This document shows positions 920 to 7,548 of a stretch of DNA of 12,136 nucleotides, piece by piece. The DNA is from Amoeboaphelidium protococcarum X5. Its lineage: Eukaryota > Fungi > Aphelidiomycota. A model generated the notes under the pieces. It was not told the origin of the DNA, ran no database searches, and worked only from the letters and a program-made list of their open reading frames with translations. Position 1 is the stretch's first letter. The number at the start of each line of letters is the position of its first letter. Location: positions 1-12,136 of the forward strand of contig JALDTO010000022.1 of the NCBI GenBank assembly GCA_023515725.1, given 5' to 3'. Made by a program: the position numbers and the translations under genes.

Positions 920-1708
920 TCAGCGTGATTATTAGTCAAAGTCATTGCAGTGGACATCATTCCTTATGAAGAGGAGACCGACAGAGGATGCTATACTACA
1001 TGCACCCAACACAATACAGGCAAGAGTACTCAGTCCATCAGATGGCGCGTCAGAATCACCCGGTAATTTGTACTGAGTAATGAAAGGAGACAGTATGGCA
1101 CCGAATCTGGCAACCATAACACACAGTCCTACAGCACGGCCTCGGATACTAGTATGGAAAGCGGCACCAGTCAGAGTGTAGCAGAGGGTGAATTCCAAAG
1201 ACACAAAAAAGTGGGCGATCAAAGAGATGACAGTGATAAGCCATCGCATTCCGCCACTAGACTATAGCATCTAACTCTATAATACAAACAAAAGTATAAA
1301 CAAGAGACCAGATATAAGTGTAGACATTACAACTCCCAACCACACTCCATCGATATCACTTCTAAATTACTCGCGATACTACTAAGCAAGAGATGATGAA
1401 GTCTATTAAGGATGATCTCCAACTTCTTGATACTCTTACTATTACCTTACACGCTTGAGATAATACAATGGATTATACCGCGTTAGCAATCTGACAAAAG
1501 CAGCGGATCCAATCTAACCAGGAATACCAATAAGAGCCACTAAAAAAGATCCAATGTACACATTTTCGCTGTGTTTAGTCAATGTAATTCCATAATACGA
1601 CATGGCAGCGGTGAACCACAATATTGAGAACACGATGCCTTTCCGAACATACGACATGATATCTTATTATTATTATTATAATTATTATTATTAATCTTCA
1701 GCGATCAT
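920..1708 (-). CDS. C-terminal half (TM7-12) of an SLC22/OCT-like MFS transporter, stand-alone ORF of 262 aa
   Basis: ATG 1708 (alternative 1657) to TGA 922-920. MIAEDQQQQLQQQQQDIMSYVRKGIVFSILWFTAAMSYYGITLTKHSENVYIGSFLVALIGIPG matches OCT TM7-8 (WF...YYG...N.Y..F...L.EIP). YTLTGAAFHTSIRGRAVGLCVMVARFGAILSPFI matches TM10-11 (Y..ELFPT..R...G......R.G.I.SP). Confidence 0.85.
1664..1693 (-). repeat. (TAA)4-TTA-(TAA)5 microsatellite encoding QQQQLQQQQQ
   Basis: On the + strand it reads (TTA)5 TAA (TTA)4. It is in frame with the MFS C-half ORF between ATG 1708 and TM7. Confidence 0.8.
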
Positions 1709-1983
1709 CACTATATATTCCGATTCGAATGATAAAGAGCTAAAGTAAATTCTAATTACTGCCGGATAGATAGCAGAAAGCCTTTGAAGTTGAGGGAAGA
1801 GACGATGCTGATTGGCTCGTTGGAGATTGAATGTCTCTTGATTCGCGTTTATCCACTTTTTCAACTATTGATGCAATTAATTTTATAATTCTGATATTGA
1901 AATCGCCTCATTAGATTGTAAATATTATTTTGCTTATTATTACTGAACTGTTTTCTTATATTGATATTTCAAGTATATATGAT
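1709..1983. promoter_or_regulatory. Putative bidirectional promoter between the two MFS halves, containing a CCAAT box (CTGATTGGC, 1808-1816)
   Basis: 275-bp AT-rich spacer between divergent ATGs. The same 9-mer CTGATTGGC lies at 3492-3500, upstream of the chitinase. Confidence 0.5.
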
Positions 1984-3120
1984 ATGAGAGTGTTTACCAA
2001 GTTGCTGTAGATCACGTCCCGAATAGTGATTCCTGATGAACCCACTGCGTACTATCAGACAGTACAATGTTTCCGACTATCGCTTGTATGGTTAATTGGT
2101 GCATTCCTGGTGCTTGCTCCAGTATTCACATTGAAGATTGATCCTGCTCAGGGTGAAAGCGGCATAAAAAGATTGAATACCATCTAATCAATGTTTCCAT
2201 ATTTAGTTAATACCGATTATGGGTAAAATTTTGATACTCCAATGTTTAATACTGTTGTATTTATAGGCTGGCTCCTCGGTGCTACAGCTTTGTCTTGGAT
2301 CAGCGATAGAGCTGGTAGACTTTACGCGTTGAGATTGAGCTTTGCATTTACTTTGTTGACTATAGTTGGATAATGTGCCGTAGGAGTCATTTTATTGTTC
2401 TATCTGAATGCGCACAATGTTGATGAATCATCCTCGCTCAATGGTCGCGGTATGTATTACGTCCTTCTTACATTTCGTCTTCTGATGGGCGCTGGAATAG
2501 GAGGCAATGGTGTGATATCTTATGTTTGGGGAGTTGAATGGGCAACATTTTCATCATAGATGATCACCGAGTATATCGATACTTAGCGTAAATAGTCTCT
2601 GAGACCATTAAGTGACGCTGAAATTGCATAAAGTCCATCATCTATGATATCTCTGCTAAGTTCTAATGCCAAGCGAAGACCATTAGTTGCTGTGTAGTAG
2701 CAGACTGAACCTGGTTATGAAGAGAGGGTTAATATGGATCAAGATGTGATTGACATTGGAGACGGCTCATTGGAGGAGGTTCAACCATAAAAGTAGCTTG
2801 GAAGTGCCAATGCATCTGTCTTACTGCAATTTCAATGGTCGATCGGATGTCTTATTCTCCCGCTTGTAGCATTCTTGGTGCCAAATTGGGTGCTTCTCAA
2901 TTTACTAACACTTTTGGTATTTGTGATGTATTATCTGTTCAATATCTGGAGTCCGTTCGATAGTCATGTACGTGAAAGTCCTAAGTGGCTGCTGTCTTAG
3001 ACAAGGTCGCGTCCAAGTCGATCTGAAGATTCGCGTCGTTTCAATTTGATGCTGAAAGAGTGTGTCGATCTCACTCAGTCTTACAATTAGAGTATTGCCC
3101 AAGAAGTGCTACAAGGATGA
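1984..3120 (+). CDS. N-terminal half (TM1-6) of an SLC22/OCT-like MFS transporter, stand-alone ORF of 378 aa
   Basis: ATG 1984 to TGA 3118-3120, no internal TGA. Motifs: FIGWLLGATALSWISDRAGR (MFS motif A, about 2302-2319), FRLLMGAGIGG (TM4), YVWGVEW, QFQWSIGCLILPLVAFLVPNW (TM5), and ESPKWLL (PESPRWL motif after TM6, 2974-2994). The stop comes about 40 codons later. Confidence 0.85.
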
Positions 3121-3627
3121 TTCTAAATTAGACTTTAAATATTACCTTGCTATGCATTTGTAAGATTTCTTTATCTATTTGGCGCTTGTATTGGAAAACA
3201 CATGTCTTGACCAAATTTGAACAAAGCAGGTATCATCCTTCACTCTTTACACAAATAAATACATTCCGAACGCAGCATGCGAGGTTTCACTGAACTGCTC
3301 ACACTTCATTAAAGAAATTGTTTTATGAGCGTAGTAAATCTATCGCAAGCACCTCTAGATGATCTTGATCTCCATGTAAGCTGCCTCGTCTCAATAGTAA
3401 TTTTTCTTCTATAGAGTTCCATTGTGATTTCGATTGTGCACTCCAAATCTAATTTATCGATTATCGTATTTCTACAATTTTACAAAGGCATCTGATTGGC
3501 GAAAGTTTAATCGGATTCGATTGAACATTAGATTAACAGGTGATGGTTGCACACACTCTTTTTCTCTTTATATTTTAATAACCACTTAGAATACATTTAT
3601 ATAGATAGAATTCGTACATAGTACACC

Positions 3628-5658
3628 ATGAAATCTTTTAGAGTTAACATTGCTTCTCTGTGCGTCTCATTGCTGATCGCGTCAAGTGTTACAGCTCAGA
3701 GCACCGCTTCATAAAACTCGTCTCAACTACCGCCGCTATAAACTCCTGCGGCCATTCCCAATGATCCCGCGACGCCCCCTCCTTCTGGTACAGTCGGCAC
3801 TGGTGTATCCTCTGTCAATATACCAGTTGCTCCCACTCCATCTATCCCTGCCGGTCCGCCTGTTAATTCGTCTCAGGCTGGTTCTCCTGCTCCAATCGCG
3901 TCTGACTCTGGTTATCGCATGGTTGCTTACTTTGCAGATTGGGTGATTTACGCGCGAAATTATCAAGTCAGTGATATCCCAGTCGACAAGTTGACTCACA
4001 TTCTGTATGCTTTTGCGAAACCTGATGCATCTGGTAAAGTGACATTGGGAGACTCTTACGCTGATATTGAAAAGTCTTTTCCTGGTGACAGTTGGGACAC
4101 TGCCAAGTAGGCCTTCCGTGGTAATTTGTGGCAGCTGAACAAGGTGGTGAAGCCAAAGCATCCGCGTCTGAAGACTTTACTCTCAGTCGGTGGCTGGACC
4201 TGGTCTGGTCCATTTTCTGATATCGCTGCCAGTGAATCCACTCGTAAAGTGTTTGCAGACTCTTGCTTGGAGTTGGTCACTACTTATGCCTTTGATGGAA
4301 TAGATATTGATTGGGAATACCCTGTGCAGGGTGGTTTGGAAACTAACAAGTATCGTCCTGATGATGGCAAGAATTTGATCCTATTATTCAAAGGTGTCAG
4401 GGAGGCCTTTGATGCCGCACCTAACGGCAAATCTCTGTTAGTTACCGCTGCTGGCCCTGCCGGTCTCGATAAACTGCAGCACTGGGATATGAATGAGCTG
4501 GATAAATATCTGGACTTTATCACTGTGATGACTTATGACTTTCGTGGTGGCTGGTCTGCATAAACTGGTCATATGACTAATTTGTATGAAGCCATTGGTG
4601 ATCCTGAAGTCAAGGAGAAGATATCCGCTGATGTCGCCATTTAGTATTACATCAAGAATGGAATGCCATCAAACAAGATCTGTATGGGTGCAGCTTTGTA
4701 TGGCAGAGGATGGAATGGTGTTGGCTCATAGAACAATGGACTCTATCAGAAGTTTACCAGTGTACCTAAAGGCACTTGGGACGATGCTTCGTCTGGAAAC
4801 ACGGGTGTCTTTGATTACAAAGATTTGCTGACCAAGATGTCGACTGGTGGCTACATCCGTCATTGGGATGACAAAGCCAAAGCACCATACGTGTATAATT
4901 CTGGGACGCAGCAAATGATCTCTTATGAGGACATGGATTCCATCAAGGCTAAAGTCTCGTATATCCAATAGTAGAAACTGGGTGGAATCATGTTTTGGGA
5001 ATTGTCAGGAGATACTAAAGACGATAAGTCTCTAGTTGGCACTGCTCACACAGCGCTATAAGGAACTACTGCAATCATTGGTACCACCTAACCTGCTGCC
5101 AATGAAGATCAGACGTTTCAGTAAACTAATGTCGATGATTCTATTGATACTTTACTGGTTCCAGATGAAGATGAAGATTCTCCTACGTAAACTGCAGGCG
5201 CTGTGGACTAGTCCACTACTCCACCCCCACCTTCTCCTGTGGCAATTTCAGATAATCAATCGGCGGCTTCCAATTCTTCAATTGCGCCTGTGCCTTAGAA
5301 TATACCCGAGAACGATGCGTCCGACTCTTTGAACAAACCATAAGGACTTGGCGACTTGGTCCAAAGCATTGCCAATATGGTTTTGCCTTTGCTGGACAAC
5401 AATGGCACTGAGAGTACTCTACCAGCTAAGTAAAATGATATCGTTTCTCCCAGCTCTAGTTTGTGTCTTGCAGAAGTCGCCACGTGTGACTCTAGTGTCG
5501 ACTCATTTAGTTGTATTGGAAGTACCTTGGCTGCCTGCAATTAAGACAATCGCTGGGATGTGTTGGCTTGTCCATAAGGTAAGAGATGTGGTATCAGAGG
5601 TGGTCAAGTTGGCTGTCTATCATCTGGTGCGTCTGACTCGAACATTCAGTTTTGCTGA
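3628..5658 (+). CDS. Secreted GH18 chitinase (class V/ChiA-like) with Pro/Ser-rich linkers and a C-terminal Cys-rich CBM19-like domain, 676 aa
   Basis: Continuous frame from ATG 3628 to TGA 5656-5658 with TAR=Gln. Signal-like MKSFRVNIASLCVSLLIASSVTA; VAYFADWVIYAR; LTHILYAFA; LSVGGW; intact catalytic DGIDIDWE (4294-4317); MTYD; ISYED; LGGIMFWELSGD; eight Cys at 5464-5655. Confidence 0.93.
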
Positions 5659-5784: not shown

Positions 5785-7548
5785 TCATTTATTTTACTGT
5801 TCACTCAATTAAGCAAGTATTGATATAAACTAATTGATTAGCTTAATGTTGTGCTAGATTCCCATATGGGTAGCTTGAACGATATACTCAACTTCAGCTC
5901 TTAGTCCTAGAGACGCGCTTTACAGCGTCACCACTCCATCATGAATACCAATTCGAGCACTTCTTGGCAGCGTAAACAAAAGCTAACGACATAGACTAGT
6001 ATTAGTCGCATCCCCTATGAATGAAAAGCATCGGACATTCGAAGCAATTTCAGTGCCGGATATAAACTTCATCAAATCTGAATGAGTATCAAACGAGCCT
6101 GTAAGCTCGGAATACTTTCTTAGAGGAATCTTGTCAGCTGTTTCTATATTGTTACCTGATAGCCAGCTTTAGATTGACAATTCAACAGATCGTGGAAGCA
6201 GAATCGCATTAGTTAGATAGCGGGTCAGCAACCTACTTCCTGACGCACCGTGATGAGGTGTAGCAATAAATATTGCAGCTGCAGCCGCAATCGGCGGACT
6301 CTAGAATAAATTTTGTAGATGTTGTTCATAAGAATACCCAATTAGAAATGGACTTAACTGCGATTACGGTCCCTTGGCAAAATCAGTTAGAACTAGCCTG
6401 CATAATAATCCGCCCTACAGTCACAAAATTAAACAATCAATTGCATAAAAACAAAAGAAACTTACATAGCTCATCCCCACGAGTACCATTTTCTAGTAAT
6501 GTTTACGATATGATTCTTAATCGTACACTGAGGCTAATTGCGATAGAGCGCGTTTAAATGCTAGAGCTTCATATAGCAGTGGGCAATTTGTAGGCATCTG
6601 CCAATACAGTATTTAAAATGAGCTGTCAAGTCCACTTTATGCGACGTAAAACATGAGTTTATCCCAAATTGACACGTTGGATAGGAATCCATGAACAAAT
6701 ACTAAAGGGATCTTGTGTTAATTGAACGGCGTGACTGAATATAATCCTTGAAAATGTTCATATCTAGAGCCACGCAAAAATCCACTCAACCAAGGAATAG
6801 CCAGACTATTTGACGACAACGAACACCCCCAAATACTCTATGCACTTATTTGATGTAGATGATCAACTACGTACGACGGGCAATGACTAGCCAATTACAG
6901 ACTCTTGCCACACTGTTAGTTTACCACAACCTCGAATGGACGGTCAGCATCAGTTCTGACAAGACACAATGATGGAACACCATCGTGATATGTGAAAAGA
7001 GAAGTAATAGGGAAACACTACAGGCTGGACTACAATTTGAGATAACTGTCGCCAAAACATTTGATATGGTACGAGGATGGCTGAGGCTATATCCGCCCAA
7101 TCATTAAAGCTCCAACTTTACCATTCAATGCATCTTGTAATTGTGACACTGAGGAGTCAAGCAAATGCTTCTTGTTCAGCACCACACGTAAATCATGATC
7201 TTCAGCATTAATGATAGCTTCTGGGACCGCGAATGAATTTACTAGACACACCACTATAGTCTACCCACTCACCTAAATATCAGCAGCACACCTCTGCTCT
7301 CTCGAGTCCAGTATTGAACGTAACAAAGAGACCTGAACCAACTACAGTTTGAACAACATCTTGGTTAGTAATCCAACGCAAACGTTATAACAGTCCAAGA
7401 ATTGATTAGAGGTATACAGAAGATCAAATACTCTTACAGCCTCAGTTAGATATTTTATGAATACGACAATCAATTCTTCACTAGGCCCATTAAAAACATA
7501 CATTTCTATGCATTTACACAGCTATCCCAATTGATTTAGTTCGAGCAT
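5785..7548 (-). CDS. Alpha/beta hydrolase (esterase/lipase, COG1075/PGAP1-like), join(7548..6466, 6414..5785), 570 aa
   Basis: GLYSVTPFNQHKIPLVFVHGFLS (oxyanion HG); MVLVGMSY|GGLL (GxSxG, restored by splicing); IFIATPHHGAS; DGVVTLQSASL (catalytic Asp); IVQATH (catalytic His); TGA at 5787-5785. Start is 7548 (alternative 7503), with an upstream in-frame TGA at 7566-7564. Confidence 0.85.
6415..6465 (-). other. 51-nt phase-0 spliceosomal GT-AG intron
   Basis: Minus strand reads TAT|GTAAGTTTCTTTTGTTTTTATGCAATTGATTGTTTAATTTTGTGACTGTAG|GGC. It has a canonical donor, a T-rich body, a TAG acceptor and an in-frame TGA (6423-6421). Removing it restores G-M-S-Y-G-G. Confidence 0.9.

Follow-up and report, generated by a model that had tools for sequence, protein, structure and literature searches.

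Two divergent genes of Amoeboaphelidium protococcarum encode the N-terminal and the C-terminal bundle of one ancestral 12-TM carrier, and both are under purifying selection. MFS carriers are normally single 12-TM chains composed of two 6-TM bundles. The pair described here is probably a fissioned SLC22-like MFS transporter that acts as a heterodimeric carrier; we infer both the pairing of the two halves and transport by the pair. The window, that is, the whole stretch of DNA that was analyzed, is an entire contig of 12,136 bp from a 23.6-Mb genome. A. protococcarum is an aphelid and a parasite of algae.

In A. protococcarum, UAA and UAG (UAR) encode glutamine (PMC5304391). Translation was performed with code 6, in which TAA and TAG are read as Gln and TGA as stop. 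Both half-gene frames are open under this code only, and the other genes of the window need it as well. The original prediction placed a TM1-6 frame ending in TGA on the forward strand and a TM7-12 frame with its own ATG and TGA on the reverse strand, arranged head-to-head at a spacing of 275 bp and free of frameshifts. All of this was confirmed: the frames of 378 and 262 aa are both unbroken between ATG and TGA, neither half has a frameshift, and the gap has the predicted length (Table 1). When read from the second ATG (1657), where the NCBI annotation starts, the C-half comprises 245 aa. NCBI lists the two halves as two hypothetical proteins.

Table 1. Features of the two half-genes and their surroundings, in window coordinates.
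Feature	Position	Strand	Description
C-half gene	920-1708	-	TM7-12; 262 aa (code 6); ATG to TGA; 23 internal TAA/TAG
N-half gene	1984-3120	+	TM1-6; 378 aa (code 6); ATG to TGA; 14 internal TAA/TAG
Divergent intergenic region, putative bidirectional promoter	1709-1983	.	275 bp; 257-286 bp in the four copies
CCAAT-containing 12-mer	1807-1818	.	kept in 4/4 copies
polyQ leader of C-half	1664-1693	-	mostly TAA codons; copy-to-copy length changes stay in frame
Gln-rich TM8-TM9 loop of C-half, ~48 aa	1349-1492	-	placed by alignment to intact relatives
Arg189, C-half	1142-1144	-	aligned with OCT3 R466 (TM4 Glu is its gate partner across the lobes)
Arg201, TM11 of C-half	1106-1108	-	position of OCT3 D478 / OCT1 D474
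Glu185, N-half, end of TM4	2536-2538	+	aligned with OCT3 E232
Long TM4-TM5 loop, N-half	2551-2799	+	dN/dS 0.17
RNA-like contig extent, C-half	883-1761	- (strand taken from gene)	run X5
RNA-like contig extent, N-half	1884-3145	+ (strand taken from gene)	run X5
Intergenic stretch before chitinase	3121-3627	.	putative outer inversion breakpoint

Alignment to intact relatives gave six TM segments for each half; a hydropathy scan recovered six in the C-half and five in the N-half, where TM4 was missed. The N-half carries motif A (SDRAGR) and ESPKW. Motif A is located in the TM2-3 loop (GATALSWISDRAGR), with D108, G111, and R112 conserved. The TM1-2 loop of the N-half is approximately 35 aa long, so short that the large extracellular TM1-2 domain of SLC22 is absent, and it is short in the aligned clade members as well. 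The long TM4-TM5 loop is older than the split, because the intact relatives carry shorter insertions at the same site. The Gln-rich TM8-TM9 loop of the C-half, which replaces a short basic loop of the intact relatives, is found only in the split form.

The N-half is immediately followed by a GH18 chitinase gene (3628-5658, 676 aa), which has a hydrophobic leader at its N terminus and RNA-like coverage. Further along the window, a hydrolase-like gene on the reverse strand contains a short intron-like GTAAGT...AG stretch (~6374-6464), which served as the local reference for splice signals. Near-identical copy pairs were found for most genes searched in the genome, in line with the genome-wide duplication reported for A. 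protococcarum (PMC10608142).

Homology was assessed with profiles, structures, and trees. Pfam scans on stop-free pieces of the window proteins matched almost nothing. Against PF00083/PF07690, the N-half scored 20.7 versus a gathering cut-off of 22.3 and the C-half 11.7 versus 33.4; the intact orthologs pass. A search with one piece of the C-half retrieved full-length proteins that also scored best against the N-half, including a 553-aa protein of A. occidentale (KAI3659969.1). The intact relatives show approximately 32-37% identity to the halves and have the GVISYVWGVEW motif in common with them. In an HMM of 501 positions built from eight intact relatives alone, the N-half matched positions 19-247 (E value, 4e-52) and the C-half positions 294-488 (E value, 6e-41). 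The halves, as predicted, do not overlap, and the break falls in the central loop. The 43-aa tail of the N-half and the 37-aa head of the C-half amount to 80 aa, which is within the 62-144 aa of the intact central loop, indicating that the loop was cut with little loss.

In the PDB profile search, the top matches of both clade profiles were SLC22 carriers, with OCT3 as the best (E values, 3e-18 and 5e-20); residues 154-328 of OCT3 are covered by the N profile and residues 337-488 by the C profile. Motif A, ESPxW, WF..YYG, and T.IR are common to the halves and SLC22 carriers. AlphaFold models of the separate halves were of low confidence (pLDDT 63 and 60), with weak Foldseek E-values. The N-half model aligned with an SLC22 N-domain over 230 residues (residues 8-304; Z 18.5; rmsd 4.1), and the C-half model aligned with MFS C-domains at Z 14-15.6, among them NorA 201-388 (Z 15.6) and OCT1 344-515 (Z 14.4). 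Both 6-TM bundles of an MFS carrier are present, encoded by genes on opposite strands rather than in one 12-TM polypeptide, and no joined transcript was seen.

In separate trees, each half grouped with the same set of eight single-chain proteins (A. occidentale KAI3659969.1 and seven environmental proteins), with support of 100/99 for the N-half and 92/90 for the C-half, both on long branches. Since the two halves share a clade with eight unsplit relatives, the split is derived. This shared placement also contradicts a descent of the halves from unrelated MFS subfamilies, which had been named as a finding that would overturn the prediction. When the genome of A. protococcarum was searched with two intact relatives, the best matches were the halves, followed by a distant SVOP-like pair, and no intact 12-TM copy was found. 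Word-based protein searches, limited in sensitivity, detected no half-size relatives elsewhere, and a scan of metagenome loci returned only one animal-type SLC22 and one bacterial MFS, with no second split lineage. In the biofilm metagenome SRR845265 (L069, L063), an intact A. occidentale-type gene and a C-half of the A. protococcarum split type were present together; the two species seem to co-occur in this biofilm.

The layout recurs in further copies. The same head-to-head arrangement is present in the homoeolog (2.5-Mb contig; 91-93% identity) and in both copies of a second strain's assembly (GCA_023515745.1; contigs of 2.2 and 1.6 Mb). Abutting contigs (300-1831, 1802-1918, and 1889-4200) with overlaps of 30 nt came from a DNA run of an unrelated study. 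The split might be suspected to result from an assembly artefact, given that the window is a short 12-kb contig and that no single Logan contig bridges both halves. The repetition of the layout on three Mb-scale contigs of two assemblies, together with the abutting contigs of the DNA run, contradicts misassembly and leaves this explanation a negligible probability.

Between the homoeologs, dN/dS was 0.09 for the N-half (Fisher p 1e-23) and 0.10 for the C-half (Fisher p 6e-16), at a dS of 0.26-0.27 for each; the neighboring chitinase gave 0.18, above either half. The 12 pairwise dN/dS values among the four copies ranged from 0.07 to 0.18 for the N-half and from 0.09 to 0.12 for the C-half (6/6 pairs). 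The starts and stops of both halves are fixed in 4/4 copies, with no premature TGA or frameshift. Neutral evolution of either half, another outcome that would have spoken against the prediction, does not fit values of approximately 0.1 per half. A related explanation, that the halves are decaying fragments of a pseudogene, could draw on their scores below the Pfam cut-offs and their long branches. It is largely refuted and highly improbable in view of the low dN/dS in all pairs, the intact frames in all four copies, and the RNA-like coverage described below.

Across the final 42 N-half codons (2992-3117), only one codon was synonymously variable, compared with approximately eight per bin elsewhere, which may reflect gene conversion or constraint at the nucleotide level. 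On contig G000:C264, a 1,969-bp direct repeat (1485111-1487079 and 1518155-1520123; 99.6%) flanks a block of approximately 31 kb that is rich in retroelement-like ORFs. Within the repeat lie the 3' end of the C-half (its last 326 nt) and the beginning of NFX1; the NFX1 adjoining the C-half is cut at 553 aa, and a full copy of 1,297 aa follows the second repeat. The protein KAI3630385.1 (163 aa; G000:C264 ~1518115-1518480), in which WD40 repeats are joined to a partial duplicate of the C-half, could be a chimera created by gene prediction or else a new fusion.

Transcription was evaluated with contigs of the runs X5, X6, and X8, which carry no RNA label. These contigs lie on genes only, leaving 623-882, 1762-1883, and ~3146-3570 empty, while the DNA run showed flat coverage; the three runs were therefore taken as RNA. 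In all three runs, the RNA-like contigs follow plain genomic sequence, those on the C-half are separate from those on the N-half, and neither joints nor loose ends were seen. Such contigs are blind to strand, start, and level, and rare forms are dropped from them. This separate coverage indicates two divergent transcripts, as had been predicted. It is strongly indicated that the halves are transcribed divergently as two mRNAs from a core of approximately 120 bp between them. Trans-splicing of two pre-mRNAs into one 12-TM message had been offered as an alternative, and the halves are indeed complementary and adjacent; the low synonymous variation at the end of the N-half could be read in the same way. 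This alternative is nevertheless very unlikely, since, besides the lack of joints and loose ends in all three runs, contigs continue beyond the N-half stop and upstream of the C-half ATG as plain genomic sequence, complementarity was not above that of shuffles (18/40), the N-half tail has no GTAAGT-type donor, and each frame retains an ATG and a TGA of its own in 4/4 copies. Minor trans-splicing may occur beside the two separate mRNAs.

The intergenic region carries frame-breaking indels between copies. An in-frame upstream ATG at 1831 was rejected as a start, as these indels break its frame in other copies. Upstream of 30 other ORFs, CCAAT showed no enrichment (3/30 vs 6/30). The motif AATCGCC(C)TCATTAG occurs at 1901-1915 of the window and at 1749-1763 of L066, a contig carrying an intact gene, downstream of an ATTGG motif in both; this 15-nt match between the two upstream regions was not significant (74/300 shuffles).

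The separate mRNAs raise the question of whether their products work as one carrier. Of the residues conserved in the clade, the N-half keeps 35/39 and the C-half 27/34. The cavity helices TM4, TM5, TM10, and TM11 are approximately as conserved as among the intact relatives. In the outward state of OCT3, E232 of TM4 forms an inter-lobe pair with R466 of TM11 (PMC10567722), and the equivalents of this pair are kept on different chains, as E185 of the N-half and R189 of the C-half. A second inter-lobe bridge of OCT3 is R239-E459; its Glu is absent here and in the aligned clade members. Two findings count against a heterodimer: TM7 has drifted (identity of 0.36 vs 0.59 among the intact relatives), and the C-half has lost seven conserved residues and gained the long TM8-9 loop.

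Accommodating this drift and the new cytoplasmic loop, the halves might no longer cooperate, each forming homo-oligomers or acting as a non-transporting 6-TM regulator or scaffold. MFS halves are pseudo-symmetric, a point in favor of such separate functions, and the C-half model aligned to N-domains as well. We consider this unlikely, as each half retains its domain-specific conserved residues, including both partners of the inter-lobe salt bridge, as dN/dS is equal in the two halves, and as the genes are tightly linked in four copies. In the heterodimeric carrier that we favor, each six-helix half would insert into the membrane independently, and the two would pair non-covalently into a rocker-switch carrier, with a shared promoter providing their co-expression.

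The substrate class can be approached through TM11. The site of OCT3 D478 and OCT1 D474 is Asp in OCTs and Arg in most OAT and OCTN carriers (PMC10567722). The Asp of the OCT subfamily at OCT1 474 is absent here, with Arg201 in its place. This residue makes organic anions or zwitterions likelier substrates than cations and suggests, as a reading of the sequence, that the pair is not a classic cation carrier. The predicted "OCT-like" identity accordingly stood in part: the SLC22-like assignment is supported by the PDB profiles, and the assignment to OCT fails on the OAT/OCTN-type Arg in TM11.

The origin of the split was approached by synteny. Downstream of the intact gene on L066 lie, in order, Hat1(+), an RRM gene(-), and a third gene(-). 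In A. protococcarum, NFX1 comes next to the C-half, and behind it the Hat1-RRM-third block recurs in the orientation it has on L066, which implies, from this one contig, that the C-half kept its place and the N-half turned. The A. occidentale locus has no clear neighbors in common with the A. protococcarum locus; the villin gene flanking it lies on other contigs in A. protococcarum. The upstream neighbor of intact orthologs is on the opposite strand in 3/3 informative loci, a weak indication. Neither a C-half remnant in the intergenic stretch before the chitinase, nor traces of the absent half next to either gene, nor an inverted repeat around the promoter was detected.

Within the split-carrier model, a single inversion of the promoter and N-half is the most likely origin, held with moderate confidence. 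One inversion of approximately 1.4 kb would have carried the promoter and N-half, with its inner break in central-loop codons, and would have put the back side of the promoter directly before the C-half. Such an event would yield precisely today's arrangement from an ancestral order of chitinase(-), intact MFS(+), and NFX1(+). The intact orthologs, trees, synteny, and purifying selection support the predicted fission and inversion. The split could also be real and have arisen by another route, either head-to-head duplication with reciprocal loss of halves or in-place fission followed by a later inversion. These routes yield the same layout, and Doa10 is a documented case of in-place fission with an internal promoter (PMC3464245); they are possible and less favored, since they need more steps, the promoter has no flanking inverted repeat, and no remnant of a missing half lies beside either gene, although remnants may have decayed.

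On balance, the evidence leans somewhat toward a naturally evolved, obligate two-chain eukaryotic MFS carrier that arose by a one-step inversion reusing a divergent promoter. If so, the covalent link between rocker-switch bundles would be dispensable over evolutionary time, and there would be a general route by which 12-TM monomers become heterodimers built of 6-TM halves. A selected and apparently expressed split carrier with intact orthologs provides a natural experiment on whether alternating access needs tethered bundles and on how the halves find each other. It also opens to study the changes that followed fission, such as the drift of TM7, the new TM8-9 loop, and the polyQ leader. With both halves "hypothetical" and below Pfam cut-offs, the pair marks a blind spot of annotation.

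Compared with known carriers, the two-gene arrangement differs from the SLC22 carriers OCT1-3, OAT1, URAT1, and OCTN2, which are single chains. The clade also differs from these carriers in lacking the large TM1-2 ectodomain, the TM10 Glu, and the C-terminal PETK motif and in having a TM4-5 insertion. The intact aphelid-type orthologs (KAI3659969.1 and the seven others) are likewise all single chains that span the central loop. Engineered LacY and GLUT1 cut in the central loop can reassemble. The aphelid carrier resembles them as an MFS protein cut in that loop, whereas the LacY and GLUT1 halves are artificial and not evolved. A literature search of limited, incomplete coverage returned nothing relevant on natural split MFS carriers or on fission by inversion. 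A survey of aphelid MFS carriers, covering the sugar porter and DHA2 families only, does not contain the terms "split," "half," or "organic cation" (PMC10608142).

Closer parallels are found among other nuclear-encoded membrane proteins. Split-Doa10 of Kluyveromyces arose by fission in a cytoplasmic loop, is expressed from two mRNAs, and its fragments reassemble into an active protein (PMC3464245). The aphelid pair likewise shows nuclear fission in a cytoplasmic loop and two mRNAs, the latter indicated here from RNA-like contigs. Split-Doa10 differs in being a ubiquitin ligase split unevenly into tandem ORFs that lie on the same strand and have gained a new internal promoter; its reassembly is proven by experiment, while the aphelid pair is known from sequence and contigs. 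The heterodimeric Nav1 of aphids, H1/H2, is encoded by back-to-back genes from nuclear fission, for which bidirectional co-expression was proposed (PMC4332693). Aphid Nav1, like the aphelid carrier, is a pseudo-symmetric polytopic protein halved by nuclear fission into back-to-back genes. It is, however, an ion channel of 2 x 12 TM with genes 1-23 kb apart, whereas the aphelid protein is a secondary carrier with halves that must rock, encoded 275 bp apart with introns not seen. As in Doa10 and aphid Nav, the fragments in A. protococcarum are complementary pieces of one gene with intact orthologs elsewhere, and both are conserved and appear on separate mRNAs, with the RNA status of the runs read from coverage. 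Taken together with aphid Nav, the pair suggests by analogy that a single promoter-inverting event can produce split genes in a back-to-back layout.
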